A stretch of DNA of 64,000 nucleotides from Anaeramoeba ignava BMAN (Eukaryota; Protista; Anaeramoebae): positions 1 to 64,000 of the forward strand of contig JAPDFW010000102.1 of assembly GCA_028826165.1 (NCBI GenBank), given 5' to 3'. A model generated the notes under the pieces. That model was given only the letters and a program-made list of their open reading frames with translations, ran no database searches and was not told the origin of the DNA. The position numbers and the translations under genes are program-made. Positions 1-28,529 of the stretch are shown here, one piece after another (within the stretch, counting starts at the first letter, position 1; every line of letters starts with the position of its first letter).

Positions 1-3000
1 AAAATATCAGTATTCAATGTTCTTTCATGTGCTTCATCAAGAATAATTACTGAATATTTTTGTAAAAGAAAAATCACTTTTCAATTTCTTTAAGTAATAT
101 TCCGTCTGTCATAAATTTACCAACTTTGTTTTATCATTAATTTTTATCATATCTAATTTGATAATCCAACTTCTTCTCAAGTTTAAAATTTCAATTCTTC
201 TGAAACTCTTTTCGCCATACTAACTGCAGCTACTCCTTCTTGGTTTGTTATTCCAATTTTACCTGGATTTGCTTTTTGTATTTAAATATTTTAAATATTT
301 TAAATATTGAACAAAAATTATTTACTTCACAACTTTTAATTGATCCATAAACCAGATTCATATAAAATTGAGAACTTGAGTTGTATTATGAGTTATTATG
401 AAATTGTTTGTGAGATAAAGATGATCAGAATCTTGAATTAAAATACAAGAACATTCTTCTTCTTGATTTTTCAATTTTAGTAATAAATCTTTTTAAATGA
501 ACATTTTTGTTGATTGATTAAATTAAATTTGTTTAAATTTCTATATTTAAATGGATTTGAATAGATAATTTCACATTGAAATTCTCCATTTTTGAGGTTA
601 TTTATAGTGCATAAACCTCCAAGAGATTGAAATTAATTGAATATTTTGGTTAATTTTTGGAATTTTGTTTGATAAATTAAATTGTTTGATTTTGTAATTT
701 TGCTATTTAAATCAAGAAAAGAATGAATAATTTCTTCATCGAATAGAAATTGGAATAAAAATGAATTTTTGGGAATTGATTTTTGTTGTGGAGAAGATAT
801 TTTATAAAAGATTGATAGTTTTGAAATTGGTTAATATCATTAAATCTTTTTAGCTAATAAAATAGATGAATAGATAATAATTATTTGATGAAGAAATATC
901 GTTAAATGAAATTGATAATCCAAAAGATAAGGATCAATATCTATTTTTGAGGGAAAAGAATATAGGATCTGGATTTTGAATTGAGAATTTGAATTTTGAA
1001 GAATTTTTGATTAATATATTTTAGCAATTGTTTTGTTTTATAAAAGTTTTTGAGGATTTGGATTATTTAGTTTATATTCATCAACAAGCCAAAGATGATC
1101 AAGACTACAATCAACAAAATCATTATTATCAAAAATATTCTATAAACAGGCAATTTTCCTTGAGGATAAATTTGAATAATTTTAGAAAAATTTTGATTAA
1201 ATGGGTAGAACTAAATCTCCTTTTTAAATTTCCATTTTTGAGGACCATAAGGAGTGTAAACAATAGAACTATTTGGTAAACTTTTTCCTGAACCTGTTTC
1301 ACAAATTATTAATAAGTTTCCATTTCTAATATAGTCTATAATATTATATTCTTACTAATAATAGGAAGTTCTAAACGATGTTTTTGAATTTCTTTTTCTA
1401 TTTACAAGAACAAAGAAAGCTTTATTTTCCTTATTATTTTGAATTTCAATTTCAATTTTCTTTTCATTTTCAATTTGATTTTCCTTTAATTTATTTTGAT
1501 TTTTATTTTGATTTTCATCTATAATTTGAAATGAATTTTTCTTTAATTTATTTTTATTTTCAATTTCATTTTGATTTTGATTTTGATTTTGATTTTGATT
1601 TTGATTTTGATTTTGATTTTGAATTTGATTTTGATTTTGATTTTTATTTTTATTTTGATTTTGATTTTGATTTTGATTTTGATTTTGATTTTGATTTTGA
1701 TTTTGATTTTGATTTTGATTTGAATTTTGATTTTGATTTTGATTTTGATTTTGATTTTGATTTTGATTTTGATTTTCATTTTGATTTTCAATTTGATTTT
1801 GATTTTGATTTTGATTTTTTTCATCTATAATTTGAAATGGATTTTTCTTTAATTTATTTTGATTTTTATTTTGATTTTGATTTTGAATTTGAATTTGATT
1901 TTGATTTTCAATTTGATTTTTCTTTAATTTATTCTTATTTTGATTTTGATTATTTTCATCTACAATTTGAAATGAACTTTTCTTTAATTTATTTTTATTT
2001 TGATTTTGATTATTTTCATCTACAATTTGAAATGGATTTTTCTTTAATTTATTTTTATTTTGATTTTGATTTTGAATTTCATTTTCATTTTCATTTTCAT
2101 TTTCAATTTGATTTTGATTTTGATTTTGATTTTGATTTTGATTTTGATTTTGATTTTGATTTTGATTTTGATTTTGATTTTGATTTTGATTTTGATTTTG
2201 ATTTTCATTTTGATTTTGATTTTCAATTTCATTTTCATTTTCAATTTCAATTTGATTTTGATTTTCAATTTGATTTTCCTTTAATTTATTTTGATTTTTA
2301 TTTTGATTTTCATCTATAATTTGAAATGAATTTTTCTTTAATTTATTTTTATTTTCAATTTCATTTTTATTTTTATTTGGATTTTGATTTTGATTTTGAT
2401 TTTTCTTTAATTTATTCTTATTTTCAATTTGATTTTGATTTTCATTTTCAATTTGATTTTGATTTTGATTTTGATTTTGATTTTGATTTTGATTTTGATT
2501 TTGATTTTGATTTTGATTTTGATTTTGATTTTGATTTTGATTTTTTTTTGATTTTGATTTTGATTTTGATTTTGATTTTGATTTTGATTTTCAATTTCAT
2601 TTTCATTTTCAATTTCAATTTGATTTTGATTTTCAATTTGATTTTGATTTTGATTTTCAATTTGATTTTGATTTTCATTTTCAATTTCAATTTGATTTTC
2701 TCTTGTTCTTTCTTGTTCAATTTCTATATCTGTTATATTAATTCCAGCTTTTCTTTCTAATAAACCTCTTTTAAGTTTTTCTTTTAAAGTTTCTTTTTTA
2801 CCTAAATTTTTTGAAGATCTAAATAATTTTAATTTATCATCATTAAGATTTCCTTTAGCAACTTGATTAATTAATTTATCTTTTAAAATGAATTTATTTT
2901 GTTTCATTTTTAATTTCCAAAGTTTTTTTTCTTTTCTTTTACTTATTCTTTTCTTTTTTAAAGGTTGATTTTTTTCAATTTTTTTTTGAAGTTTTTTTTG

Positions 3001-3182
3001 ATTTTGTTTTTCAATTTCTTTTTCATTTTTTTTATTAATTATAATTTGATTTGATAAATCATTAGTTTGATAATCATTTGTTATTCCAAGTTGAGCTGAT
3101 AATTCTGGAGATAAAATTGATAAATCTTGTTGATTTTGATTATTATTTTTAATTTTTGTTTTGAAATTCTTTTTCTTCTCAT
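1..3182 (-). CDS. DHX37: DEAH-box RNA helicase DHX37/Dhr1 (3'-partial, intein-containing, indel-disrupted)
   Basis: Manual minus-strand translation from ATG at 3180-3182: [50 protein letters not shown]/[intein]/[67 protein letters not shown] intron 272-325. Continues past the window edge. Confidence 0.88.
385..1282 (-). mobile_element. Class 3 intein with degenerate LAGLIDADG homing endonuclease, inserted in the DHX37 P-loop (GSGK|T)
   Basis: Block [14 protein letters not shown] follows GSGK directly; [17 protein letters not shown]; block [10 protein letters not shown] (~1080-1115); IDPYL and QSLGGLC endonuclease remnants; block [16 protein letters not shown]; block G NNFIITHN followed by extein T+1 (382-384). 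Confidence 0.9.
1440..2700 (-). repeat. Coding low-complexity (AATCAA)n tract, N/Q/E-rich, within the DHX37 N-terminus
   Basis: GATTTT hexamer arrays on + interleaved with a repeated unit that reads roughly [20 protein letters not shown] on -; lies between conserved DHX37 segments. Confidence 0.75.
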
Positions 3183-3235
3183 ATTTTTAAATTAAAAATA
3201 AAAAAATTAAAATTTCATTTTTCATTTTTAAAATA
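3183..3235. promoter_or_regulatory. 53-bp bidirectional promoter region between DHX37 and myotubularin, with tandem TTTCATTT
   Basis: Divergent ATGs at 3182 (-) and 3236 (+); tttcatttttcattttt at ~3213-3229. Confidence 0.6.
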
Positions 3236-6200
3236 ATGATTGTTTATGGTTTATTTGGAAAAAAAAAAGAAAAAGATTCAAACCAAAAACAAATTCCAAG
3301 ACAAATTAATAAAGAAAGAAGAAAAACTGTTGTTTCTCCAAAAGAAAATAAACAAAATGAAAAACCAAAAAAAAGAAGAAGTTCTTTTTCAAATGAATCT
3401 TTAGAAAAAAAAGAAACGTTAAAAAAAAATCAAAAGAAAAAATCTAATTCTAATTCTAATTCTAATTCTAAATCTAATTCTAATTCAGATTCTAATTCAA
3501 ATCAAAATGAAAATTCAAATCAAAATTCAAATCAAAATTCAAATCAAAATTCAAATCAAAATCAAAATCAAATCAAAATTTAAATTCAAATCAAAATTCT
3601 AATTCAAATCAAAATGAAAATTCAAATCAAAATCAAAATGAAAATTCAAATCAAAATCCAAATGAATTAAGCTGTATTTTATTCTTAATAATAAAAATAA
3701 TTTAATCAAAAAAAAATACCTTATTTATAATTCCAAATTTATTTCTTTATTAAATTGGATTGAATTGGATTGTATTTATAAATTTAAATTATTTTTAGAT
3801 GGAGTTATTCAAGTTGCAACAAAAGATTCACATTTTTTAAAATCAGTTCAAAAAAAAGTTATTCATATTGAAAATGAACAATTAATTGAATCAGCAAAAA
3901 ATGTTACAATAATTTATAATAAAAATACAGAATCACAATTAAATATTTTAGGAGAACTTATATTAACAAGTTATAGATTATATTTTATACCTGATGATGA
4001 ATCTATTTATGTATAAAATATTAAAATAAATATAAAATTAAATATTAAAATAAATATTAAATTAAATATTAAAATAAATATTAAATTAAATATTAAATTA
4101 AATATTAAAAATAAAAATAAATAAATTAAAATTAAATATAAAAATAAATATTAAAATAAAATTAAAATTAAATAAAAAAATAAATATAAAATTAAAAATA
4201 AATAAATTAAATATTAAAATTAAATATTAAATTAAATATTAAATTAAATATTAAAAATTAAATATTAAATTAAATATTAAAATAAAAATTAAATAAATAT
4301 TAAAATTAAATATTAAAAATTAAATATTAAAAATTAAATATTAAATTAAATATTAAAATTAAATATTAAAATTAAATATTAAATTAAATATTAAATTAAA
4401 AATAAATATTAAAATTAAAAATATTAAAATTAAATTAAATATTAAAAATTAAAATATTAAATTAAATATTAAAAATAAATATTAAATTAAAATATTAAAA
4501 AAATTAAATATTAAATTAAATATTAAAATTAAATATAAAAAAATTAAAATTAAAATAAATATTAAAATAAAACATAAAATAAAATATTAAATATTAAAAA
4601 TATTAAATTAAAATAAATTAAAATTAAAAATAAAAAATTAAAATTAAATATAAAAATTAAATTAAATTAAAAATTAAAATTAAAATAACATTAAAATAAA
4701 TATTAAATTAAATATTAAAATAAATATTAAAATAAATAATAAAATAAATATTAAATTAAATATTAAAATAAATAAAAATTAAATATTAAATTAAAAATAA
4801 ATATTAAATTAAATATTAAAATTAAATATTAAAATAAATATTAAAATTAAATATTAAATATTAAAATAAATATTAAATTAAATATTAAAAATAAATATTA
4901 AAAAAAAATTAAAATTAAAATTAAATTAAATATTAAAATAAATAAAATAAATATTAAAAATTAAATATTAAAATAAATATTCTTAGAATAATCAATTAAG
5001 TGAAGAACTTCCAGATATTCTCATGGAATTATTGAAAGAGCTGAAAAATAGGAGGACAAAAAGTCGAAAAGAATATTCATATGGAATTAAAGTTGTTTGT
5101 AAAGATTTTAGAACTTATCGTTTTATTTTCTTCAAGAAAATCATAGTAGAAGAGAAATTTTTATTAAAATTTTTCCAAAGAGCATTTATTTCAGATGTTC
5201 GTAAAACATTTTCATTCTTTCATAAAAACTCTGAAATAAAAGATTTAGGTTGGTCAATTTATGATCCAGTTAAAGAATATCAAAGACAAGGTAAATCAAA
5301 ATAATTTTATAATAATTTATTGGTTTTTTCAATTAAAAAAATTTTTTTAATTTAAATTTTTAAAATAGGATTAATTTTTGAATCTGGAGATTGGAGAATA
5401 TATGATATAAATAAAGATTATTCTCTTTGTCCTACTTATCCAAGAATATTTGGTTTTCCAAGTAAAATGGAACAGAAAATAAAAGATTGTTCTAAATTCA
5501 GAACAAAAAATAGATTACCAGTTTTAACTTGGAAAAGTCCAGATAGTGAAGCTGTTCTTTGTAGATCATCACAACCAAAAACAGGTAAAAAGAAAAAAAT
5601 TATTTAAAAATCGGAAAAAATTTTTAAAAATCGGAAAAAAAAAAAAATTTTAAATGAAAAGGATTTGCTGATTCAAGAAATGCAAATGATGAAAAATTAT
5701 TAAAAAATATAAGAAAACTTAATAGTAAAGGATTTAAACTCCAAATATTTGATTGTAGACCAAAAGCAAATGCAGTTACTAATAAAGCTAAAGGAGGAGG
5801 ATTTGAAAATACAGATTTTTATTCCGATTGCAAATTAACATTTTTAGGAATAGATAATATTCATGTTATGAGAGGATCTCTGAAGAAACTAATCAAAATA
5901 TCACAAAATGCAGTTCTTAATGATAAGAAATGGCTTACTAAATTGGAAGAAACAAATTGGTTTTTACATTTACAAAAAATTGTTTATTGGTCAACAGTAA
6001 CAGCTAAATATATTGAAGATAAATATTCTATTCTTGTTCATTGTTCTGATGGTTGGGATAGAACAGCTCAAGTTTGTTCACTTGCTGAATTAATATTGGA
6101 TCCTTATTACAGAACATTTAACGGATTTATTGTTTTAATTGAAAAGGATTGGTTAAGTTTTGGTCATAAATTTTCACAAAGACATGGTCATGCTGATAAA

Positions 6201-6728
6201 AAATCAAAGGATAAACAAAGATCTCCTGTTTTCTTGCAATGGATGGATTGTGTTTATCAATTTTGGAGACAATATCCTAATGCTTTTGAGTTTAATGAGG
6301 ATTTCTTATTGGGAGTTATTGAACATGTTTATTCTTTAAGATTTGGCACTTTTTTGGGAAATTGTGATAAAGAAAGAAATGATTTTGAATTATCTAAATA
6401 TACTTATTCTTTATGGACTTATATGAACCAAAGAAAAGATATTTATCTCAATCAAGTTTATTCACCAATATCTGGATCATTATATCCAAGTTCATTTTTA
6501 AGACATTTTTCTTATTGGGAAAGGTGAAGAATTTTTTATTTAAATTTTAATTTTTATTTTAATAAATTATTTTTTATTTTATTTAGACTTTATATGAAAG
6601 GAATGACTGAAGCTGGTTTACATTCTTCTGATGAAAAAATTCTTAATATTAATCAAACTTGGCAATATCTTATGGAAAATACTCAAAAATTAAAATCTGA
6701 AAATGATAAAATTCATAAAAATTATTAA
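3236..6728 (+). CDS. Myotubularin-family phosphoinositide 3-phosphatase (GRAM + PTP, catalytic motif intact)
   Basis: GELILTSYRLYF (GRAM), YSYGIKVVCKDFR, LCPTYP, RSSQP, IFDCRPKANAVTNKAKGGG, catalytic HCSDGWDRT, IEKDWLSFGHKF, SPVFLQWMDCVYQ. Introns ~3674-3798, 4011-4986, ~5291-5368, 5585-5661, ~6524-6586. 3' end approximate. Confidence 0.93.
4011..4986 (+). repeat. Intron filled with ~11-13 nt AAATTAAATATT-type minisatellite
   Basis: GT at 4011, AG at 4985-4986; nearly pure A/T tandem repeat in between. Confidence 0.85.
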
Positions 6729-6832
6729 AATTCAAAAAGAAATTGATAAAAGAAAAGAAAAGAATTAAAATTTAAAAATCATTTTTCATTTTTCATTTTT
6801 CATTTTAAAAATAAAAATAAATAAAAATAATA

Positions 6833-8429
6833 ATGAATAAGAATAATAATTTAACTTTTCAACAAATTTTTAAGTAAATGTAAAAAATTCCAAAAGCAGA
6901 ACTTCATGCACATCTTAATGGATCAATTAGAGAATCAACAATTAAAGAATTTATAGAAAAATCAAATTTAAAAACAAAATAAATCCAGAAGATACAAAAC
7001 TTCTTGAAAAAGGAAGTGAAAGAACACTTAGTGATTGTTTTAAATTATTTGATTTAATATATTTATTAATTGATGATTTAGAAAAAATAAAAAGAATTAC
7101 AAAAGAAGTAATTGAAGATTTTTATTATGATAATTGTATTTATCTTGAGCTTAGAACAACTCCACGTTTTTTAAAGAAATCATCAGAAAATCAAGAAAAA
7201 GCAACTAAAAAAGAACATATTGAAACAATTATATCAACAATTAAAGAAACAACTAAAAATTTAAATAATGGAATTGTTGTTAAATTAATATTAAGTATAA
7301 ATAGAGCATATTCAAAAGAAATTGCAAATGAAACTATTGAAATTATATCACAAATTAATCAAAAAGATGTTATTATTGGAATTGATTTTGCTGGAAATCC
7401 TTTTAAAAATAAATTTATTGATTTTGTTCCTGTTTTAAAAAGCAAAAGATTTAGGTCTTTTTTTATTACTTTACATTTTGCAGAAAAATTGATTATGAAG
7501 AAAGTATTCAAATGTTAAAATTTAATCCTCAAAGATTAGGTCATGCTAATTATTTAAATGATGAAATTCGTAATTTATTATTTGATTCAAAAATTCCTGT
7601 TGAAATTTGTTTAACTTCAAATGTAAAAACTGAATCTGTTCCAAGTTTTGAAAAACATCATGCAAAAGAATTTTATAAAAGAAATCATCCAATTTCATTT
7701 TGTACAGATGATCAAGGTTTATAAATTTTTTATCCGATTTTTTAATTTTAATTTTTTATCCGATTTTAAATTTTAATTTTAATTTTAATTTTAATTTTAA
7801 TTTTGATTTAAATTTTAATTTTAATTTTAATTTTTAATTATAATTTTTTATCCGATTTTTAATTTTAATTATAAATTTGATTTTAATTTTAATTTTAATT
7901 TTAATTTTAATTTTAATTTTAATTTTAATTTTAATTTTAATTTTAATTTTTAATTTCAAAATTTAATTTTAATTTCAATTTTAATTTTAATTTTAATTTT
8001 AATTTTTATCCGATTTTTAATTTTTAATTTTAATTTTAATTTTATTCAATTTTAATTTTAATTTTAATTTTAATTTTAATTTTAATTTTAATTTTAATTT
8101 TTTAATTTTAATTTTAATTTTAATTTTTAATTTTAATTTTAATTTTTTAATTTTTTTTAATTTGATTTTAATTTTTAATTTAATTTTAATTTTAATTTTA
8201 ATTTTAATTTTTTAAATTTAATTTTAATTTTAATTTTAATTTTTTAATGTTTTAGGTGTTTTTTTAACTTCTTTATCTAAAGAATTTGCAAATGTTAGTT
8301 TTTATTTAAATTTTTCAATAAAAAGAATTAAAAGAAATTTCAAAAAGTTTTAATTATGCTTTTGCTAAAGATGAAGCATTAAAAAATATAAAGAATTTAT
8401 AGAGAAAAAGAAAATAAATTTAAAATAGA
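6833..8429 (+). CDS. ADAL: Adenosine deaminase-like protein (ADAL / N6-methyl-AMP deaminase family)
   Basis: PKAELHAHLNGSI, YLELRTTP, LILSINR, IGIDFAGNP, TLHFAE, RLGHA, PVEICLTSNV, FCTDDQG/VF. Intron 7717-8255; several indels; 3' end approximate. Confidence 0.88.
7717..8255 (+). repeat. Intron filled with (TTTTAA)n, with interspersed TATCCGATTT
   Basis: GT-AG intron splits TDDQG|VF; hexamer array with four TATCCGATTT copies. Confidence 0.8.
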
Positions 8430-8548
8430 AAAATTAATTTAGAAAATTAAAAAAAATTAAATAAAAAAAAAAAAATAAAACAATATAAAAGAATTTTTAA
8501 AATTATTTTTTTTTTCATTTTTTTTTCTTTTTTTTTAAATTTAAAAAA

Positions 8549-11500
8549 ATGTTTGAAGTTGATTTTACAAAAGATGTTAAAAAAAAACATAAATCTTGGA
8601 ATACAGGAATACTTAAAATTAATAATAGAAGAGTAATAATTAATAAATTTAATTAAATCAAATAAATTTACTTATAAATTTAATAGGTAACACTTTTTAA
8701 TGATGAAGATGAAGAATTAGAACGTTCTTGGTTAAAAAAAACTGATGATCTTGAAATTGGAAAGAATATTTATTTATTACATTATTCTGTTATTATAACT
8801 GGAATTAAAGAAAAACTTATTAAAAATACTTCTACTTCTTCTATTACTAAAAAAAATAATTCAAATAATTCAAATCAAAAAATATTTAATTCTTTAAATT
8901 CTTTAAATTTACCTTCTCAAGAAAAAAAAAGACAAAAAAACAAAAGAAAAAAATTTACAGTTCCTTTTAAAAAGAAACCAAATCAAAATGAAAATGAAAA
9001 TGAAAATGAAAATGAAAATGAAAATGAAAATGCAAAATGAAAATCAAAATCAAAATAAAAATCAAAATGAAAATCAAAATCAAAATCAAAATCAAAATCA
9101 AAATCAAAATCAAAATCAAAATCAAAATCAAAATCAAAATCAAAATCAAAATCAAAATCAAAATCAAAATCAAAATCAAAATCAAAATCAAAATCAAAAT
9201 CAAAATCAAAATCAAAATCAAAATGAAATTATATTAAAATCTCCTTTAAAAAATAATATTGAAGAATTATATGAAGGATTTAGGTAAAAAAAAATTATTT
9301 AATTCATTTCAATAATCTTTACTAAATTTATATAAAAATATTTATTTATTTTTAGACCATTATCTAAATTTTTATTCCCAACAAGTTATCAATGCTTTCA
9401 TTTACCAGTTAATTCTAAAATAGAAAGAAAAATTAAAATACCACAAGAATTTGAAAATTTTGAAGAATATAAAAATATTTTCATTTCTTCTTTAATTGAG
9501 GAAATTAATATTAAAGTACTTGAAATTGGAATGTCTTTTTATTCATTAATTCGTAAACTTAAATGGGTTTCAGAAGATGAAAATATTGTTTGTTGTAAAC
9601 ATGGACCTTGTGTTATTAAAATTGTAAAAAAAGAAGGAGAAAATCAAGGAAGATTTTTTTATTCTTGTAGATTACCTCATAAAGATCCAGATTGTTGTGA
9701 TGCTTTTGCTTGGGCTGATCGTGATATTACTTCTAAAAACAAAGGAATTAAAATCAAAAAAAGGAAAGAAATTCCAAATTTAGATAAATCAAATTATTCA
9801 AGTAGTTTTAATCTTCATCTTCCTGAACTTGAAAAATTATTCTTTTCAAATCAAATTTTATTTCATTCAAATTGTGAAATTTTTAAAAAGATTGAAAATG
9901 TACAAGAAAAGAAATCAAAATTATTTACAAAAATGATTAAAAAAAGAAATTTAGCATTTAAAAAAAGACAAAAACAATTTAGAAGAAATCAAAAAAGACG
10001 TAAAAATAATGAAAGTGATGAAAGTGATGAAAGTGATGAAGATGAAGATGAAGAAGAAAGTGATGAAAGTGAAGATGAAAAAAAAGATGTATCTTTTATT
10101 AAACAAACAACAGGAAATCAATTTTTTTTAAAAGTTAAAAAACAAATTAATGGAGCTGAATATACAAAAGATGATTTATGGGTTATTTCTAATGTTCAAA
10201 ATTTTGAACCTAAACAAAAAGATGATTTTATTTTTTTTGCTAAAAGTATATTTTTTGGAGTTGGAACATCAGGTTTAGTAACACTTGAACCAATAGGAGA
10301 TTTTCCAAATTTATTTGAAATTGAACCAAATAAGAAATATAAAGATATTTTTGCAATTAAATGTTTTAATGCATCAACAGAATTTTCAGCAATTAATAAT
10401 ATAGAAATTATAAAAGAAGAAAATATTCCATTACTTGAATTTATATTAAAGAAATATCAAAATCAAGAAAATGAAAATGAAAATGAAAATAATGAAAATG
10501 AAAATGAAAATAATGAAAATGAAAATAATGAAAATAATGAAAATGATGAAAATGAAAATGAAGAAAATGAAAATGATGAAAATGAAAATGATGAAAATGA
10601 AAATGAAAATGAAAATGAAAATGAAAAACCTTTGAAATCTAAAATTAAATTCCCATCAGAAATTGCTTACAAAAAATCACATAAAATAATTTCAAATTTT
10701 AAAACTCAATCTATTCAATACGAAGGGAAAATATTTCCAAATAATCAAAAAAATTATTCATTTCCTTTTGAACAAATTTCAAATGATTTAATTGAAGAAT
10801 CAAAAATAGAAACAATTAAAAAATATAATTTAAATGAAGATCAAATTGAAATATTAGAAAAAATATCAAAATGGTTTATTAAAAAAGAAAGTTATAAAAA
10901 TTCAATAGTATTAGTTCATGGAGTATTTGGCTCAGGAAAAAGTTTTTTATTAACAATATTAATAATTTTTATGATTGAAATTCTTGATAACTTAAAATGA
11001 ATCAGAACATATTAAAATTATGATTAGTGCAATTACTAATATTGCAGTTGATAGAGTATTAGAAGGATTACTTGAACTTGGATTTGAAGAATTTATTAGA
11101 ATAGGAAGTTTAAAGAAAATTTCTAAAAAAATATTACCATATACAATATCAGGAGAGAAAAAAAAAGATATTGAAGAAACAATCAAAGAATTAAAAGAAA
11201 TGATTTCAGAAGAAGATTATCAAGATGAGAATGAATTAGAATCAATTAAAAAAACATTAGATGAATATGAATTTATCAAGAATAATTCACATATTTTATA
11301 CAATCAAAAAATGAAGAAAATAAGAGTTGTTGGAACAACATGTGCTGCTACAAATTTTCCTATTTTATCTGGATGGAAATTTCCAATTATAGTTCTTGAT
11401 GAAGTGAGTCAAATGATTGAACCAATTTCAATGCTTCCAATTTTAAAATTTTCATGTGAAAGATTATGTTTATTTGGAGATCCATTACAATTACCACCAA

Positions 11501-12848
11501 ATTTAGCAGGAAATGAAAATTATCATAAAAACAAATTATTATTTAAAAAGAAAACTCAATTAATCAAAATTCAATTAATCAAGATTCAAATCAAATTGAT
11601 AATTTATATAAAACATTATTTGATAGATTAGCAGCAAATGAATATAAACCAATTATGCTTAGAACTCAATATAGATGTCATCCTTTAATTAGTCAAATAT
11701 GTAATAACTTATTTTATCAAGGAGCTTTATTAGATGGAATTTCCTCAAATCAAAGAAAACCAATTGTGAATAATTTTCCACCACTTTTTTTCTTAGATTC
11801 TGAAAATGGAAAAGAAGAGAAAACTTGGACAGGAAGTTATAGAAATTTTTATGAAGCTAAAATTATTATTGGATTAATTGAAATGCTTTTGAAAGAAAAT
11901 ATTAGTTCAAGTAAAATTGGTGTAATCACTTTATATAAAGAACAAGCAAGATTAATCAATAAACTTTTAACAATATTTCAAAATGGGAAATCAAAATCAA
12001 AATCAGAAAAAGAAAAGAAGAAAAATAAAAAAGAAAAATCAACAGGAATATTAGGATTAAAAAATACATTTACAAAAAGAAAAACAAACAATAATAATAA
12101 TAATAAAAAAAGTGGAAAAAATGAAATGAAACAAATTCAAATATCAACAGTTGATGCTTTTCAAGGAGCTGAAAAAGAAATTTGTATTGTTTCTTGTTGT
12201 AGAACAGAAAATCTTGGTTTTATTGAATCACCAAATAGATTAAATGTTCTTTTAAGTAGAGCTAAAAATCATTTAATTATTGTTGGAAGACAAAAGGTTT
12301 TAAATTCTAGTTCTGTTTGGAATTCTGTTATTAAACATTGTATTTTTTCTATGGGAGGAATTTGTTATGCAAGTGATGTTTGTAAAAATGTTGAAATTTT
12401 GAATTTGAAAAAGGAAAAACATTTTGATTTAGGAAATTTTGATTTAAATTTTTTTGGAATTGATTTAAATTCTTTAATTAATTTTGGGAATGAAAATCAA
12501 AATCAATTAAATGAATTAAATCAAAATCAATTAAATCAATTAAATCAATTAAATCAAAATCAATTAAATCAAAATCAAAATCAAAATCAAAATCAATTAA
12601 ATCAATTGAATCAAAATCAAAATCAATTAAATCAATTAAATCAAAATCAAAATCAAAATCAAAATCAATTAAATCAATTAAATCAAAATCAAAATCAAAA
12701 TAATAAAATGGTTATTGAACAATTAATTAAAGAAAATGATTTAAATGAATTTGAAGATAAAATTATTAAAACAAAAAAAATTGAAGAAAATACAAAAATT
12801 TCAGATAACAAAACAAAAGAATTACTTGAAAAATTTCTTGATTTTTAA
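8549..12848 (+). CDS. ZGRF1: ZGRF1-like protein (DUF2439 + GRF zinc finger + Upf1/DNA2-like SF1 helicase)
   Basis: N-terminal FTKDVKKKHKSWNTGILKI (DUF2439-like); CKHG...KKEGENQGRFFYSC...CDAFAWAD (GRF); VHGVFGSGKS, TNIAVD, LDEVSQ, GDPLQL, QYRCHP, TVDAFQGAEKE, RLNVLLSRAK. Introns ~8633-8686 and ~9284-9355; frameshifts near 11000 and 11540-11630. Confidence 0.85.
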
Positions 12849-12907
12849 ATAATAAATAAAAATTAAATTTCATTTCATTTTTTTCATTTTTTTCATTTTT
12901 TTTTTAA

Positions 12908-15900
12908 ATGAATTCTGAAGAACAAAAAGTTGGAATTGAAACAAAATTATTTTCAGGAATAAAAAAAGGAGATATTAAAGATATTCCAGCTCATTGTGTT
13001 CCAAGAACTTGTATTGCAAAAATAACATTACTTGGTTAATAATAATAATAAATAAAAATAAGAAAAAAATTTTAAATTAAAATTAAATTAAAAAAATAAA
13101 AATAGAAATTTTTTTAAATGAAGAATTTGATTTTCCTTCACCTTTAGAATTATCATTAAGTATTGATTCAGGAAAGAGTAAACTTTCAACTGGAGCAATT
13201 CATATTCCAATTAAACAAGAAGAAGAAAATGAATCAAAAAATCAAAAACAAAATAAAAATACAAAAACAACAATTCAAACAATGAAACAACAAAGAAAAT
13301 CAACTCCAATAACTATAACTCCTTCAAAAAATGATAAGAAAAATATTTCTAATAAATTAGAATCTTCAAATTTAATTTTACCTTTTACAGAAAATGATTC
13401 TCAACTTATTTATCAACTTGCTTATGTTTTTTCTTTTCGTTATTTACACAATTTAAAAGTAAAATTATTTATTAATTAATTTATTAATTTATTAATTAAT
13501 TTAATTTTTTAATATTTTTTAGTATTCAGATAATATATTAAATATTCATCTTCAAAGAACAAAAAAAAGAGGAAAGAAAAAATCAACAATTGGTATTGGT
13601 AAAATAAATCTTGCAGATGTTGTAATTATCAAATTTATTTTAAAATAGAAATTTATCAAATTTATTTTAAAAACAGAAATTTATCAAATTTATTTTAAAA
13701 ACAGAAATTTATCAAAATTATTTTAAAAACAGAAATTTATCAAATTTATTTTAAAAACAAAAATTTATCAAAATTTATTTTAAAAACAGAAATTTATCAA
13801 ATTTATTTTAAAAACAGAAATTTATTAAATTTATTTTAAAAACAGAAATTTATCAAAATTTATTTAAAAACAGAAAATTATCAAAATTTATTTTAAAAAC
13901 AGAAATTTATCAAAATTTATTTTAAAAACAGAAATTTATCAAATTTATTTTAAAAACAGAAATTTATTAAAATTTATTTTAAAAACAGAAATTTATCAAA
14001 ACTATTTTAAAAACAGAAAATTATCAAAATTATTTTAAAAATAGAAATTTATTAAATTTATTTTAAAAACAGAAATTTATCAAATTTATTTTAAAACAAA
14101 AATTTATCAAAATTTATTTTAAAAACAGAAATTTATCAAAACTATTTTAAAAACAGAAAATTATCAAAATTATTTTAAAAATAGAAATTTATTAAATTTA
14201 TTTTAAAAACAGAAATTTATCAAAATTTATTTTAAAACAGAAATTTATCAAAATTATTTAAAAAACAGAAATTTATCAAAATTATTTAAAAACAAAAATT
14301 TATCAAAATTATTTAAAAACAGAAAATTATCAAAATTATTTAAAAACAGAAACTTATCAAAATTATTTAAAAACAGAAACTTATCAAAATTATTTTAAAA
14401 CAGAAATTTATCAAAATTTATTTCAAAAACAGAAATTTATCAAAATTTATTTTAAAAACAGAAAATTTATTAAATTTATTTAAAAACAGAAACTTATCAA
14501 AATTATTTTAAAAACAGAAATTTATCAAATTTATTTTAAAAACAGAAATTTATCAAAATTTATTTTAAAACAAAAATTGATTAAATTTATTTTTTAAAAA
14601 TTTATTAAAATTAGTTACAAATGACTTTCGATTCATCACTAAAATTAATAGAACCAAATACAAATAATTTAAGAGCTAAAATTAATATTCGTGTAGTAAC
14701 AATACCTTTAAAAATTGGAGCATTATTAAATATTCAAAATGAAGAAGTTAATGATATTGATGGAGAAGATTTTGAAGAAAAAGATAAACAGTAAAAAAAA
14801 ATATTTTAAATATTTTAAATATTTTAAAAATTAATAAATTAATAAATTAATAAATTAATAAATTATTATTTAGTTCTTCTGATTCAGATGATTTACAATA
14901 TCTTATTGAAGGTCCAGAATTAACACAAATTGAACCAAAACAAAAAAAGAAAAGATTTGGAAAATTAAGAAATAAACTTAAATTTGGAGCAAGATTTAGA
15001 AAAGGAATTAAAAAGAAAGGAGGAAAACAAGAAAATGAAATTATTTCAATTCAAAATCAAAATCAAAATCAAAATCAATCAAATAATGATTTAAATCAAA
15101 TGATAAAAGAAGAAGATTCAAGTGATAAAGAAATAATAAATTTGACAAAAATCTTGAACAAGAAAAACAAGGAAATGAATCAACTGAAAAAATAGAACAA
15201 GAATCACAATCAGAAACACCTATAAAATTTATGAATGAAGAAAATAAATCACTTAAATCTAGTTTAAAAAAATCAAATTCAGCAAATTCTTATCCTTTAA
15301 GTAAATTGATTTTATTGAATTTTAAATTTGAAATTGAAAACAAGTTGGATTTATTAATTTATTATTTTTGTTGGTTCTTTTTATTTATAAATTAATAATC
15401 AATTTTTAGTTTCTTTTTGAAAGTGTAACAAGAACATTACAAAATTTATTTAATTCATCAAAAACAGTGGAAAATATATTCCTTTTAAAAGCAGGAAAAA
15501 GAAGAACTCAAAAATTATTACCATGGATTAATTTATCATCTCTTCAAGGAAAATTAATTTGGATTCAAAATTTTTTAGATATTCAACAAACATTTTCAAC
15601 AGTTGTAAAATATCAACAAAAAATTAAAACAAATAGAACTCCTTTTAAAATTGTTGTTCTTGGATCTGATGTTTTTATAACAGAAATTTTACGTTCATAT
15701 GTTGATATTTTATCAAAAACTCAAAAACCACTTGAATTAATAAAATTTTATATTTTACCAATAGGTAGATTTAAAATTATTTATAAAATTAAATATATAA
15801 TTATTTATAAAATTAAATATAAAATTATATATAAAATTAAATATAAAATTAAATATAAAATTAAATATAAAATTATTTATAAAATTATTTATAAAATTAT

Positions 15901-18307
15901 TTATAAAATTATTTATAAAATTATTTATAAAATTAAATATAAAATTATTAATAAAATTAAATATAAAATTATTTATAAAATTATTTATAAAATTATTTAT
16001 AAAATTATTTATAAAATTAATTATAAAATTATTTATAAAATTATATATAAAATTATATATAAAATTAAATATAAAATTAAATATAAAATTATTTATAAAA
16101 TTAATTATAAAATTATTAATAAAATTATTTATAAAATTAATTATAAAATTAAATATAAAATTAATTATAAAATTATTTATAAAATTATTTATAAAATTAT
16201 TAATAAAATTATTTATAAAATTAATTATAAAATTATTAATAAAATTATTTATAAAATTATTTATAAAAATTAATTATAAAATTAATTATAAAATTATTAA
16301 TAAAATTATTTATAAAATTATATATAAACTTATTTAATAAAATTATTTTATAAAATTATTTATTAAATTATTTATAAAATTAAATATAAAAATTATTTAT
16401 AAAATTAAATATAAAATTATTTATAAAATTATTTATAAAATTAATTATAAAATTAATTATAAAATTATTTATAAAATTATTTATAAAATTAATTATAAAA
16501 TTATTTATAAAATTAATTATAAAATTAATTATAAAATTATTTATAAAATTAAATATAAAATTAAATATAAAATTATTTATAAAATTAAATATAAAATTAT
16601 TTATAAAATTAAATATAAAATTAAATATAAAATTATTTATTAAATTAAATATAAAATTAATTATAAATTATTTATAAAATTAAATATAAAATTATATATA
16701 AAATTATTTATAAAATTAAATATAAAATTAAATATAAAATTATTTATAAAATTAAATAAAAATTGTTTATAAAATTATTTATAAAATTATTTATAAAATT
16801 ATTTATAAAATTAAATATAAAATTATATATAAAATTATTTAAAAATTATTTATAAAATTAAATATAAAATTATTTATAAAATTATATATAAAATTAAATA
16901 TAAAATTAATTATAAAATTAAATATAAAATTATTTATAAAATTAAATATAAAATTATTTATAAAATTAATTATAAATTATTTATTAAATTATTTATTAAA
17001 TTATTTATAAAATTATTTATAAAATTATTTATAAAATTAAATATAAAATTATTTATAAAATTATTTATAAAATTAATTATAAAATTAAATATAAAAATTA
17101 AATATAAAATTAATTATAAAATTATTTATAAAATTAATTATAAAATTAAATATAAAATTAAATTTAAAATTATTTATAAAATTAAATATAAAATTATTTA
17201 TAAAATTATTTATAAAATTAAATATAAAATTATTTATAAAATTAATTATAAAATTATATATAAAATTAAATATAAAATTATTTATAAAATTATTTATAAA
17301 ATTATTTATAAAATTATTTATAAAATTATTTATAAAATTATTTATAAAATTATTTATAAAATTATTTATAAAATTATTTATAAAATTATTTATAAAATTA
17401 TATATAAAATTATATATAAAATTATTTATAAAATTATTTATAAAATCAAAATTAAAAAAGGCAAGAAAATTGATATTGCACTTCATATTGCATCATTAGA
17501 TTCACAATATAGAACTTTATTTATTCATAGTAATTGGAAAAATTTATTTGATGAACAAGAAAAATTTACAAATCAAGAAATAGAATTTATTGTTTCATCA
17601 ATGGATAAATATATATATGGAGGAAAATATACAACATTATTAAATATTAATGAAGCATTTTTAACAATAAAAGGAGAAGATTCTGATTCATTAATAATTC
17701 AAAAAACAATTCCATTTCTTAAATCAATGAAAATTGGTGAACAAAAAGATTTTGAAAAACAAAATGAACATGTTTCAGAACCTCCTAGAGTTAGTCTTGA
17801 TTATTGGGTTAGACATCAAAAAGATAAAAAAGAAATAAAAGAGAAAGATGAAAAGAAAAAAGAATCCAAAAAAGAAAGAAAAGATAAAAAAGTAAAATTA
17901 AAATAAAAATAAAAAAAGTGGAACAAAATTTATTTTATTTATTAATTCTTAATTTATTTTAGATAACAAAACATGTTACTTTGGAATTTGTTGTTGCTAC
18001 TCCTTTAAGAACTATTGCACTTGCATTAAAATTAGATCAAAATGAATTACCAATTTCAGGAGAAAGTTTTTCTTTATTAACAGTTTATACAGATAAAAAA
18101 AGAAATTTATCAAGTAAAAAAGAAACAAAATATCAAAGAAGAGCTTTACAAATTTCAAAATTATTAGCAAAAACACTTGATAATAAAAAAGGATTTGTTG
18201 TTAATATTGATAGTATTGATTGGACTGGAGTTTCTTTAATAACAATTAGACCTCAATGGAATTCTCAAACTAAATATTTTCCTTTAGCAGTTTTTAATAA
18301 AGTGTAA
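12908..18307 (+). CDS. PACS: Phosphofurin acidic cluster sorting protein (PACS family)
   Basis: CVPR; FSFRYLHNLK/YSDNILNIHLQR..IGIGKINLADV/LQ (furin-binding-region-like); KIVVLGSDVFITEILRSYVDIL..KFYILPIG; IASLDSQY; C-terminal IDSIDW...QW..KYFPLAVF. Seven GT-AG introns. Confidence 0.82.
13622..14614 (+). repeat. Intron composed of a ~27-nt minisatellite (AAATTTATCAAATTTATTTTAAAAACAG), roughly 35 copies
   Basis: Tandem units visible directly; GT at 13622, AG at 14613-14614; splicing restores the PACS frame. Confidence 0.88.
15765..17460 (+). repeat. 1.7-kb intron composed of a 12-nt (ATAAAATTATTT-type) minisatellite
   Basis: GT at 15765, AAG at 17458-17460; splicing joins LPIG to KKIDIALHIASLD. 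Confidence 0.88.
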
Positions 18308-18718
18308 TTTTGAAAAAAAAAGAAAAAAACCGAAAAGAAAATAATTTTTTTTTTTGTTTTTTTTTTTTTTTGAATTGATAAATTTAATTAAAAAAAAGTG
18401 GAACAAAAATGAAAAAATTTTAATTTTTTTTTTCTCTTTTTTTTGAATTTATTTTTAGTTATTTTCCTCAAATTTCTTTTTTTAAATTCAAAAAAAAGAA
18501 AAAACGAAAAGAAAAATCGAAAAGAAAAACAAATCAAATCAAATCAAAATGAAAAAAAAAAATAATTTTGAAGAAGTGGAATAATATAAAAAGCTCTCAA
18601 AAAAAGAAAATCAAAAATCAAAAATGAAAAATGAAAAATGAAAAATGAAAATGAGGAAAATTTGAAATGAAAAATGAAAAAATAGAAAAAGAAATGAAAA
18701 AAAAATTTGATTTGGAAT

Positions 18719-21899: not shown

Positions 21900-24200
21900 A
21901 AATTGGAATTTTATATTTATTATGATTAAAAATTTAGTAAAATATTTTAATTAAATTTTATCTTTATTTTTAATTAATATTAAATAATAATTTATAAATA
22001 ATTTAATAGTATTTTATATTTAATAAAATATTTAAAAGGAATTAATTAAATTATTTATATTTATTTTGATTAAAAATTTAATAAAATATTTTAATTAAAT
22101 TTTATCTTAATTTTTAAATAATATTTAATTATAATTTATAAATAATTTAATAGTATTTTATATTTAATAAAATATTTAAAAGGAATTAATTAAATTATTT
22201 ATATTTATTATGATTAAAAATTTAATAAAATATTTTAATTAAATTTTATATTAATTTTTAAATAATATTAAATAATAATTAATAAATAATTTAATATTAT
22301 TTTATATTTAATAAAATATTTAAAAAGGAATTTATTAAATTGTTTATATTTATTATTATTAAAAATTTAATAAAATATTTTAATTAAATTTTATCTTTAT
22401 TTTTAAATAATAATAAATAATAATTAATAAATAATTAAATAGTATTTTATATTTAATAAAATATTTAAAAGGAATTAATTAAATTATTTATATTTATTAT
22501 GATTAAAAATTTAATAAAATATTTTAATTAAATTTTTATATTAATTTTTAAATAATATTTAATAATAATTTATAAATAATTTAATAGTATTTTATATTTA
22601 ATAAAATATTTAAAAGGAATTAATTAAAATATTTATATTTATTATGATTAAAAATTTAATAAAATATTTTAATTTAAATTTTATATTTATTTTTGAATAA
22701 TAATAAATAATAATTTATAAATAATTTAAATATTATTTTATATTTAATAAAATATTTAAAAGGAATTTATTAAAATATTTATATTTATTATGATTAAAAA
22801 TTTAATAAAATATTTTAATTAAATTTTATCTTTATTTTTAAATTAATAATAAATTATAATTTATAAATAATTAAATATTATTTTATATTTAATAAAATAT
22901 TTAAAAAGGAATTAATTAAATTATTTATATTTATTTTGATTAAAAATTTAATAAAATATTTTAATTAAATTTTATCTTAATTTTTAAATAATATTTAATT
23001 ATAATTTATAAATAATTTAATATTATTTTATATTTAATAAAATATTTAAAAGGAATTAATTAAAATATTTATATTTATTATTATTAAAAATTTAATAAAA
23101 TATTTTAATTAAATTTTATATTAATTTTTAAATAATATTTAATAAGAATTTATAAATAATTTAATATTATTTTATATTTAATAAAATATTTAAAAGGAAT
23201 TTATTAAAATATTTATATTTATTATTATTAAAAATTTAATAAAATATTTTAATTAAATTTTATATTAATTTTTAAATAATAATAAATAATAATTTATAAA
23301 TAATTAAATAGTATTTTATATTTAATAAAAATATTTAAAAGGAATTTATTAAATTATTTATATTTATTATTATTAAAAATTTAATAAAATATTTTAATTA
23401 AATTTTATCTTTATTTTTAAATAATATTTAATTATAATTTATAAATAATTTAATATTATTTTATATTTAATAAAAATATTTAAAAGGAATTAATTAAATT
23501 GTTTTATATTTATTATTATTAAAAATTTAATAAAATATTTTAATTAAATTTTATCTTTATTTTTAAATAATATTTAATAATAATTTATAAATAATTTAAT
23601 ATTATTTTATATTTAATAAAATATTTAAAAGGAATTAATTAAATTATTTATATTTATTTTGATTAAAAATTTAATAAAAATATTTTAATTAAATTTTATC
23701 TTAATTTTTAAATAATAATAAATAATAATTTATAAATAATTTAATATTATTTTATATTTAATAAAATATTTAAAAGGAATTAATTAAATTATTTATATTT
23801 ATTATGATTAAAAATTTAATAAAATATTTTAATTAAATTTTATATTAATTTTTTGAATAATAATAAATAATAATTTATAAATAATTTAATAGTATTTTAT
23901 ATTTAATAAAATATTTAAAAGGAATTTATTAAATTATTTATATTTATTATTATTAAAAATTTAATAAAATATTTTAATTAAATTTTATCTTAATTTTTAA
24001 ATAATATTAAATAATAATTAATAAATAATTTAATATTATTTTATATTTAATAAAATATTTAAAAGAAATTAATTAAATTATTTATATTTATTATGATTAA
24101 AAATTTAATAAAATATTTTAATTTAATTTTATCTTAATTTTTGAATAATATTTAATAATAATTTATAAATAATTTAATAGTATTTTGTATTTAATAAAAA
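21900..24200. repeat. Satellite array B, 144-146-bp AT-rich unit, ~16 copies
   Basis: Anchor AAGGAATT with GG at 22038, 22182, 22327, 22471, 22616, 22762, 22908, 23052, 23196, 23341, 23486, 23631, 23776 and 23921. Confidence 0.95.
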
Positions 24201-24220
24201 AAAATTATTTTTTTTTGAAT

Positions 24221-24248
24221 TTTCATTTTTCATTTTTTTCATTTTTTT
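24221..24248 (+). promoter_or_regulatory. Triple TTTCATTT initiator-like element
   Basis: tttcatttttcatttttttcattttttt ends ~14 nt upstream of the ATG at 24262. Confidence 0.6.
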
Positions 24249-24261
24249 CTTTTACCAGAAA

Positions 24262-25329
24262 ATGAATTACACTTGTTTAATTGTCATTTTAACAGGTTTA
24301 ATATCAACAATTTTTGGATGTGGATATTCAACACATTTCTACATCTCACAGCTAGCAATTGGGGAATCTGGACAATTAACACCAGAATTATACAATTTAC
24401 TTTCAACATATTCAGATATAGTACAAGTTGGATCGAGTTCACCAGATTGGGGATGGAATTTCCTTATTAAGAGATACCAAGAACGCTCGTTATTCATGCA
24501 TGAAGAAATTTTTTTAACAACATCATTTGATTATGTGAAAAAAAAGTTCTCAAATTTTAACGATGAAGAAGCAAAAAAATATTTGGCATTTTTCATTGGA
24601 CTTGGCGGACATCAAACAGCAGATCTTTACTGGCATGGATACAACGGGGATCCATTAGCATTTCTTCTTGAGGCAGCGCATAAAGATTTCAACAAAGAAA
24701 ATTTCGAAGGAATAACTGAGCAAATAGTTGAATGGGGAGTGGATCTTTTTATTTGGAGAAATCAGAAACCGACCGTTAATTTCAAATGGTGGATTCCTGC
24801 CCAAGCTGTTTCGGATATATACACACAAGCCGGCGGTCCTGATGTTTCTCCAACAGAATTTGTGCTTGGAATGGATCTTTTAAAAGCGATTATTTTACTT
24901 CTTAAAACCCTTAATTGGTTCGGTGATGAACTCGGCAAAATTATCGAGCCATGGACCCATGATAACTACATGACCTATGCGCCAGGCGGTATAAATCACT
25001 GCGCAGAAATGTCTGTTCCTTATTATTCTGATGCTTGGCTTTATCTTAATGATAAACAATCAGATTTATCTTCTTTTTTTGCCAAGCCAAAAATTGAATC
25101 CGTTTTTGATCAAGATTTCGAATTTTTTGAAAATGTTATTCCTGCTGCTCAAGAATTGATTGATAATGGTATCCTTGTTATAGACCATACTGATCTTGGT
25201 GATGGTGTTGTTGTTACTGAATCCCCTCATATTCCTGATTTGTCAAAATTCCTCGGTTTGTTAACTCGTTATTTCGGAATTGAAATTTTGCAGAAGCTTT
25301 CTTATGAAGCTCTTCGTGATTTTCTTTAA
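24262..25329 (+). CDS. Secreted zinc-dependent phospholipase C / GPI-PLD catalytic-domain-like protein
   Basis: Hydrophobic signal peptide then CGYSTH (compare GPI-PLD CGLSTH), GSSSPDWG, FFIGLGGHQTADLYWH (compare FLFGITSHMAADVSWH). Intronless and visibly more GC-rich than its neighbours. Confidence 0.75.
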   Translation: MNYTCLIVILTGLISTIFGCGYSTHFYISQLAIGESGQLTPELYNLLSTYSDIVQVGSSSPDWGWNFLIKRYQERSLFMHEEIFLTTSFDYVKKKFSNFNDEEAKKYLAFFIGLGGHQTADLYWHGYNGDPLAFLLEAAHKDFNKENFEGITEQIVEWGVDLFIWRNQKPTVNFKWWIPAQAVSDIYTQAGGPDVSPTEFVLGMDLLKAIILLLKTLNWFGDELGKIIEPWTHDNYMTYAPGGINHCAEMSVPYYSDAWLYLNDKQSDLSSFFAKPKIESVFDQDFEFFENVIPAAQELIDNGILVIDHTDLGDGVVVTESPHIPDLSKFLGLLTRYFGIEILQKLSYEALRDFL

Positions 25330-25480
25330 TTTTTCGTTTTGATTTCTTTTCCAATTCAATTTGATTTTTAATTCAAATTTCTTTTTCAATTCAATTTTGA
25401 TTTCCATGTTGAATGGAAATAAAAACAAATGATTCACAAAATTCATTTTAAAATTTTTTTGGTTTAGATTTATTTAAAAT

Positions 25481-28480: not shown

Positions 28481-28529
28481 AGAATTAAAAAAAATGAAAA
28501 AAAGGAAATGAAAAAATGAAAAAATATTT

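Follow-up and report, generated by a model that had tools for sequence, protein, structure and literature searches.

Contig JAPDFW010000102.1 (C103) of Anaeramoeba ignava BMAN begins inside a gene for the helicase DHX37/Dhr1, in which about 300 codons stand between the Lys and the Thr of the Walker A motif. What is this insert, can the gene be read through it, and to which lineage does it belong? We analyzed the first 64,000 positions of the contig (the window; 17.6% G+C, thus 82% A+T), taken from an assembly of 42.8 Mb in 147 contigs. A sequence-only reading had proposed a class 3 intein that was acquired from a virus or prokaryote, or moved in from another helicase gene, and on whose splicing the helicase now depends. 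From sequence comparisons, the insert in the Walker A motif of DHX37 is very probably an intein of the class 3 lineage with 305 codons, of which the window carries a frameshifted second copy and another contig, C75, an intact open reading frame (ORF).

The insert and its host gene

On the minus strand of the window, the insert lies exactly between ETGSGK and TTQV at 385-1282, and both the coordinates and the motifs of the sequence-only reading were confirmed. The explanation that indels hide the insert from the ORF track was right as well, given that the 898 nt are no multiple of three and that the reading crosses all three frames with many stops. The helicase exons flanking the insert are also frameshifted, three bases of one Gly codon are missing from the N-extein (GETGSGK in the intact copy), and the gene runs off the contig at base 1 within motif II. 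The features of the intein and of its junctions are as follows:

385..1282, minus strand: intein coding stretch of the window copy, 898 nt, from Ser1 to Asn
1282-1280, minus strand: Ser1 codon, by sequence reading
387-385, minus strand: Asn codon ending IITHN, by sequence reading
1283..1300, minus strand: N-extein Walker A motif, E-T-G-S-G-K
373..384, minus strand: start of the C-extein, T-T-Q-V, with Thr+1 at 384-382
1223..1282, minus strand: block A, with the Ser1-Leu2 pair common to all eight inteins of the Ser1 clade (see below)
1089..1109, minus strand: block B core, C-S-L-D-H-L-W, with Ser B:7, His B:10 (1097-1095) and Trp B:12 (1091-1089)
490..970, minus strand: LAGLIDADG-fold domain, limits approximate owing to the indels
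~935-900, minus strand: LAGLIDADG motif 1
737-702, minus strand: LAGLIDADG motif 2
385..453, minus strand: blocks F and G, with Cys F:4 (447-445), Thr G:5 (393-391), His G:6 and Asn G:7
453-439, minus strand: ECSCI, the second Cys being the block F Cys (447-445)

A search of the same genome placed the insert sequence also at C75:379070-380078, with 96% identity, and there the intein is intact (915 nt, 305 codons, C75:379142-380056). One frame of 492 codons spans it, running from ...IICGETGSGK through 305 residues (SLPNSS to IITHN) into TTQVPQFLYESGYGSIK, after which a short GTAAGT...AG intron and a 500-codon exon follow. Removal of the insert from this ORF restores the canonical DEAH motif I, GETGSGK/TTQVPQFLYESG (here and below, a slash marks a junction), and Thr+1 is predicted to act both as splice nucleophile and as the Walker A Thr. 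The sequence-only reading, correct about the motifs, was silent on the truncation at the contig start, on the degraded and duplicate nature of the window copy, and on the readable allele elsewhere.

The host assignment to an orthologue of DHX37/Dhr1, with the intein between the Lys and the Thr of Walker A, is supported. The exons were searched one by one, not as a joined protein, and the best matches of the exon after the intein were yeast Dhr1 (7mqj, E 3.9e-137), 6h57 (7.4e-135) and DHX37 (6o16, 4.9e-134). Mouse and human DHX37 matched at ~1e-134 to 1e-130, far above DHX8 (7e-84) and Prp43, which came at ~1e-84 to 1e-81. Across the assembly, similarity at the DHX37 level is confined to the C75 locus and the broken copy in the window. 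Behind them come other DEAH paralogues, which reach no more than 49% identity over parts, and this search found no intein-free DHX37 locus. DHX37/Dhr1 is essential for small-subunit ribosome biogenesis. Given that no intein-free gene was identified, it is reasonable to suppose that the cell depends on removal of the DHX37 insert. The earlier claim of a helicase dependent on protein splicing holds to this extent, but not for the window copy, which as assembled is unable to encode the product.

That the insert is an intein was assessed at the levels of sequence and of structure. The T-H-N/T and D-H-L-W signatures are both present, and H65, H304 and N305 do not vary among nine paralogous inteins from the same genome (see below). 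With the intact copy as query, a phmmer search of PDB sequences identified the gp41-1 intein (E 5e-9), in an alignment that covers the N-terminal half and the last 42 residues; since gp41-1 aligns to both ends only, the middle of the insert is an insertion. In this comparison, W67, C285 and T303 align with W65, C107 and T123 of 6riz (the positions engineered as F65W/D107C/T). A profile built from the nine paralogues and run against solved inteins strengthened the gp41-1 match to 8e-14 and added the class 3 DnaB inteins from M. smegmatis (Msm DnaBi1, 6bs8, 2.3e-6) and M. chimaera (MchDnaB1, 6rix, 5e-6; 6riy, 4e-5), with no further solved intein below E 0.8. The AlphaFold2 model based on the nine-paralogue alignment has a mean predicted local distance difference test (pLDDT) score of 85.5 and a predicted template modelling (pTM) score of 0.85, with helices at 121-132 and 182-196. 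By Foldseek, the whole model resembles PI-SceI (9e-12), TliVMA, PhoVMA and PI-PfuI, while the middle domain alone matches I-DmoI and the splicing domain alone the gp41-1, Prp8, MchDnaB1 and Msm DnaB inteins. A Hint domain is thus recovered by phmmer, by the profile and by structure comparison, and as modelled the insert is a Hint domain (blocks A, B, F and G) with a LAGLIDADG-fold domain between blocks B and F. Judged by the gp41-1 match and by the residues invariant across the nine paralogues, the motifs are not a product of chance.

Other explanations for the interrupted motif were considered. The insert could be an unusually long intron that is spliced out of the RNA. However, its boundaries read AAA/AGT and AAT/ACA and not GT...AG, excision at the nearest GT/AG pair would take TTQV with it and so break the motif, and the introns seen here measure 66-75 nt. 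Moreover, the 305-codon ORF is in frame with both exteins, and the catalytic residues of inteins have been kept across nine diverged paralogues. On the boundary sequence and the conserved ORF, the intron reading was rejected, and we regard it as extremely improbable. It might also be that the intein is inactive, so that the C75 gene would be dead or would encode a helicase with an interrupted P-loop. Frame drift in the N-terminal repeat region of the C75 gene speaks for this reading; nevertheless, all splicing residues are intact, C75 is the only DHX37/Dhr1 locus of the genome, the remainder of its gene keeps long ORFs with conservation at the level of Dhr1, and other Anaeramoeba inteins have been shown to splice (PMC10710043). 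We therefore hold an inactive intein to be highly unlikely, and a spliceable intein on C75 remains the reading we follow.

The duplicated block and the broken window copy

The rest of the host gene in the window, and the block that is shared with C75, comprise:

262..337 (approximate), minus strand: short AT-rich spliceosomal intron after ...YESGYGSIKS, GTAAGT...AG in the intact copy
1..261, minus strand: start of the next DHX37 exon, frameshifted and cut by the contig end at base 1
1301..3186, minus strand: N-terminal part of DHX37, including a long low-complexity region
1..18426, no strand given: duplicated block, counterpart C75:363181-380443, 88-96% identity with gap-rich differences

Within the N-terminal part, GATTTT-type hexamer arrays on the plus strand (1400-2700) encode NQ, KI and SK runs of DHX37 on the minus strand, and the frame drifts inside these arrays in both the window and the C75 copies. 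Within the intein, the window copy differs from the C75 copy by 17 indel events of 1-2 bases each, every one of them frameshifting, and by 22 substitutions. No C75 counterpart was found in the genome search for window positions 24000-30000; thus, the duplication is limited to ~18.4 kb. Inside this block, genes are frameshifted now in one copy, now in the other; for example, ORF 11547-12845 of the window is broken up on C75, and a C75 ORF of 504 codons is broken up in the window. At the same time, a 289-codon ORF (window 5658-6524, 867 nt) is 100% identical in both copies, with neighbours that differ by 5-10%. Patchy polishing of a duplicated stretch would explain this mixture of identical and divergent segments.

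From its sequence, the window copy as assembled would encode nothing, and the functional allele is taken to be that on C75. Whether the broken copy exists as such in the genome is less easily said. It could be a true decayed paralogue, that is, a pseudogene in a real 18-kb segmental duplication, as opposed to unpolished Nanopore redundancy of C75. The former would fit the substitutions of 2-4% that accompany the indels between the copies and the frameshifts that each copy shows relative to the other in further genes of the block; a second duplicated, frameshifted intein-gene pair lies within a single contig, C68, and pseudogenised inteins are mentioned in PMC10710043. Against it, 13 of the 17 intein indels fall in A/T homopolymers, and in 13 of the 17 it is the window copy that has lost bases, as is common for Nanopore consensus errors. 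The identical 867-nt coding stretch beside its divergent neighbours looks like patchy polishing, and the window copy adjoins a contig end. The assembly was made from Nanopore reads of a genome with 80.65% A+T and was polished by Pilon at a minimum depth of 5 (PMC11550330), a setting that also counts against a decayed paralogue. Taken together, a real pseudogene is plausible, though somewhat less probable than redundancy in the assembly.

The pair on C68 concerns a Prp16/22-like DEAH helicase gene present in two inverted copies ~90 kb apart (461933-465158 and 372955-376180), each with a related intein at the same GSGK/TTQ site; one copy is intact and the other frameshifted, the same pattern as for DHX37 on C75 and C103. 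Elsewhere in the window, a myotubularin-like phosphoinositide phosphatase gene was identified in several ORF pieces at 3765-6527 on the plus strand (HCSDGWDRTAQ in ORF 5868-6527), and a non-coding repeat of ~700 bp (25650-26344) recurs more than 140 times, with 89-94% identity, across many contigs, where the copies frequently overlap or lie in tandem.

Related inteins and the class 3 lineage

Protein and DNA searches of the genome recovered related inteins that are 35-44% identical to the DHX37 intein and located in P-loops. Their hosts and junctions are:

Dynein heavy chain AAA1 (three paralogous dyneins): GPAGTGK/SLRNST...VTHN/TETV
Dynein heavy chain AAA3 (the same three dyneins): GPPGSGK/SLRNSA...VTHN/TMTL
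Two kinesins: GATGAGK/SL...THN/TYTM
Rad51-like protein: GLSGTGK/SLPIDS...THN/TQLA
Brr2/ASCC3-like helicase: ...GK/SLPNNA...THN/TNIA
Prp16/22-like DEAH helicase: GQTGSGK/SLRNSA...THN/TTQL

A more distant member, 21% identical, is found in a CHD/SNF2 gene, where the spliced reading is GLGK/AQPLDAM... with Ala as residue 1. The nine paralogues, DHX37 included, average 40% identity, and across all of them H65, W67, C285, T303, H304 and N305 are invariant, together with a few structural residues. Eight of the nine begin with Ser; the CHD/SNF2 intein is the sole one with a non-nucleophilic residue 1, and it is also without the first Cys of the block F C-x-C. The sequence-only reading had pointed to the P-loop GK/T as a favoured intein site, and in this genome one family indeed occupies the P-loops of unrelated genes.

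In the CHD/SNF2 gene (C71, minus strand; L031:1843-1908), a GT...AG intron of 66 nt separates the Walker A Lys from Ala1 of the intein, exactly at the junction. In the Brr2/ASCC3-like helicase (C18; L025:889-1500), the exon ends with ...APTGAG and the Lys before Ser1 is found ~500-600 nt of low-complexity sequence further on, an arrangement that suggests an intron within the P-loop just before the intein.

When run against a library of 1.84 billion proteins, the nine-paralogue profile matched 19,198 proteins, 6,606 of them at E <=1e-30. From the top 150 library proteins, all of which carry inteins of the Trp-Cys-Thr type, 196 full-length inteins were taken and combined with the nine paralogues into a set of 205. 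Cys F:4 and His B:10 are present in all 205, Thr G:5 in 202 and Trp B:12 in 199, and the insertion sites mostly read G-x-x-G-x-G-K followed by T or S. Residue 1 is Ala in 124 inteins, Pro in 29, Ser in 18 (11 of which are Anaeramoeba sequences) and Cys in six, with other residues in the rest. By these sequence features, the retrieved family corresponds to the class 3 inteins as defined by Tori et al. (PMC2807308).

Trees were computed with FastTree on all rows and with IQ-TREE (LG+G4) on 60 rows, both without a class 1 outgroup. The eight inteins with Ser1 form one clade (FastTree support 95; Shimodaira-Hasegawa-like approximate likelihood ratio test in IQ-TREE 99), which includes those of dynein AAA1 and AAA3, the two kinesins, the Rad51-like protein, the Brr2/ASCC3-like and Prp16/22-like helicases and DHX37. 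This clade stands among inteins with Ala1 or Gly1 whose hosts are PhoH-like proteins, AAA_5 proteins and AAA ATPases, and one such neighbour lies on a metagenome contig with small, tightly packed same-strand genes and a phage-type Holliday-junction endonuclease. Parsimony makes Ser1 the derived state, which arose from a non-nucleophilic residue. In the 60-row IQ-TREE tree the clade has no resolved sister group, and its internal order is weak. The CHD intein groups apart, beside the intein of an SNF2-domain protein, in a join of two long branches. Sequence and trees thus support the part of the origin claim that places the DHX37 intein in the phage and bacterial class 3 lineage. The other part, a move from another helicase gene, gained nothing from the trees: a direct DEAH-to-DEAH transfer from the Prp16/22-like gene to DHX37 was rejected, as the two inteins are not sisters in either tree and show no sign of such a move.

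The middle domain has the two-fold LAGLIDADG alpha/beta fold, as seen in the Foldseek matches to PI-SceI, PI-PfuI and I-DmoI. In relatives outside Anaeramoeba, the first motif of this domain is ...PYLLGLLLGDG, with Asp in 81% of them, and the second is ...LLQGLMDTDG, whose second Asp is kept in 88%. In the DHX37 intein the two catalytic Asp positions are Phe and Asn, and both Asp are replaced in all nine Anaeramoeba inteins. Pfam LAGLIDADG_3 was found in the outside relatives and weakly in two of the nine Anaeramoeba members, with no match in the DHX37 intein. With both catalytic Asp lost, the DHX37 element is most likely immobile by its own nuclease, and the same probably applies to the other eight Anaeramoeba inteins; their spread between P-loops would then be either old or driven in trans. 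The nine inteins retain a conserved SLGG(I/L)C strand and the fold of the domain. It may be that the endonuclease domain is kept for a non-catalytic reason, e.g., folding or DNA binding.

Splicing route and significance

Class 3 inteins are defined by a non-nucleophilic residue 1, a Trp-Cys-Thr (WCT) triad, Ser or Thr at +1, and an obligate Cys F:4 nucleophile with a branched intermediate at block F (PMC2807308, PMC5222942, PMC7664689). Most of them sit in the ATPase P-loops of helicase-type proteins. Among 37 WCT inteins, three were found to start with Ser or Cys, and their class was left open (PMC2807308). The DHX37 intein has the triad and Thr+1 and belongs to the lineage.

Several observations nonetheless weigh against a plain class 3 intein. 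Pfam, run on the intact DHX37 intein alone, gave no match (on stop-free pieces of the window copy it returned noise only, and among the nine paralogues two reach Intein_splicing or LAGLIDADG_3). The strict definition requires that residue 1 is no nucleophile, and the DHX37 intein has Ser1, which together with Ser B:7 and His B:10 would permit a class 1 first step. Finally, grafting the WCT residues onto gp41-1 was insufficient for productive class 3 splicing and gave mostly C-terminal cleavage (PMC7664689), so that the signature alone is no proof of mechanism. The class 3 label that had been given to this intein is thus sound as a statement on lineage and signature, supported by the triad and by the trees, but given Ser1 it is not a statement on mechanism.

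Comparison with known inteins leads to a similar picture. Like the bacterial and phage class 3 inteins (MP-Be DnaB, Msm DnaBi1 6bs8, MchDnaB1 6rix and Dra Snf2), the DHX37 intein combines Trp B:12, Cys F:4 and Thr G:5 with His B:10, a C-terminal His-Asn and Thr or Ser at +1, and it interrupts the P-loop of an ATPase directly after the Lys. In contrast, the former have Ala, Pro or another non-nucleophile at residue 1 and a block A of the AQPLD... type, whereas block A of the DHX37 intein reads SLPNS. The solved class 3 structures are mini-inteins, while the DHX37 intein keeps a degenerate endonuclease domain, and its host is a nuclear eukaryotic gene with spliceosomal introns. The best solved sequence match, the cyanophage-like gp41-1 (6qaz), shares Thr G:5, and in its engineered form (6riz) Trp65 and Cys107 align with Trp67 and Cys285; natural gp41-1, however, is a split mini-intein that belongs to class 1 and carries Cys1, Phe B:12 and Asp F:4. 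PI-SceI and the VMA-type inteins have the same two-domain layout, with LAGLIDADG between blocks B and F (template modelling score ~0.7 on the query). PI-SceI, at ~12% sequence identity, is a class 1 intein (Cys1) whose endonuclease is active and retains both catalytic Asp, where the DHX37 intein has Phe and Asn.

We lean, by no wide measure, toward splicing by the class 3 route. In favour of it are the invariance of the triad in the nine paralogues, the Cys at F:4 where class 1 inteins normally carry Asp, and the relative in the CHD gene that has Ala1 and keeps the triad. The precursor would be translated straight through the insert, and Cys285 (F:4), placed by His65 and Trp67, would attack the peptide bond between Lys and Ser1. 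The N-extein would then be transferred to Thr+1, and cyclisation of Asn305 would free the intein, with an O-N shift restoring GSGK-TTQV. Ser1 probably contributes to splicing in some way.

It may instead be that the intein has class 3 ancestry but splices by the class 1 route, with Ser1 performing an N-O acyl shift and the W-C-T triad being structural or accessory. This would account for the strict conservation of Ser1-Leu2 in the eight-member clade despite an overall identity of ~40%, and Ser B:7 and His B:10 are available in the DHX37 intein. Also, Ser1 or Cys1 arose repeatedly in the WCT family, with three state changes in the 60-row tree and 24 of the 205 inteins. However, the triad residues Cys F:4, Trp B:12 and Thr G:5 show no variation among the nine paralogues and hardly any among the 205 relatives, and the CHD-gene intein, with Ala1 and an intact triad, indicates that the lineage can do without a nucleophile at residue 1. 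A class 1 route is thus the less probable of the two, though a serious candidate, and the small share of probability beyond the class 3 and class 1 routes falls to a dual or other route. One rather speculative proposal, to which we give little weight for now, is that the eight Ser1-Leu2 inteins are a eukaryote-specific offshoot of class 3 that regained an N-terminal nucleophile while keeping Cys F:4, and that they splice by a hybrid or switchable class 1/3 route as immobile, endonuclease-dead passengers in essential P-loops. If this were true, they would be natural "dual-nucleophile" inteins in which, for example, a redox-insensitive Ser1 path backs an oxidation-sensitive Cys path in an anaerobe.

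In eukaryotes, nuclear inteins are rare, and class 3 inteins were, to our knowledge, long regarded as a feature of bacteria and phages only. Anaeramoeba had been named as a reported exception, and rightly so: Gallot-Lavallée et al. (PNAS 2023; PMC10710043) described 103 inteins in A. ignava BMAN, including three in one dynein and three in ASCC3, with Prp16, kinesin and a chromodomain SNF2 protein among the hosts. The members of their cluster 1 "appear to be Class 3 inteins", are all in P-loops and share N-terminal residues with phages, a pattern that suggests non-allelic transfer between the P-loops of unrelated proteins (PMC10710043). The DHX37 intein agrees with this cluster, as it likewise sits in a Walker A P-loop (GSGK/T) and, at 35-44%, exceeds the ~30% identity that goes with membership. 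"Atypical N-terminal residues" are reported for the cluster; here, eight of nine members begin with Ser. The main text of PMC10710043 does not name DHX37. Nevertheless, the novelty of the find was overrated in the sequence-only reading: class 3 P-loop inteins of Anaeramoeba that spread non-allelically had been published, so the DHX37 intein is real but not new in kind, organism or interpretation.

What the present analysis adds is modest: that an intact locus on C75 has a broken duplicate in the window; that the P-loop inteins with Ser1 make up a single clade, surrounded by Ala1/Gly1 inteins whose hosts are of bacterial or phage type; and that the catalytic residues of the endonuclease are lost in all nine members, which makes present-day, self-driven homing unlikely. 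An essential ribosome-biogenesis helicase whose ATP-binding loop would exist only after protein splicing is a striking dependency, and one to which attention had been drawn for Anaeramoeba in 2023, for the same intein family.

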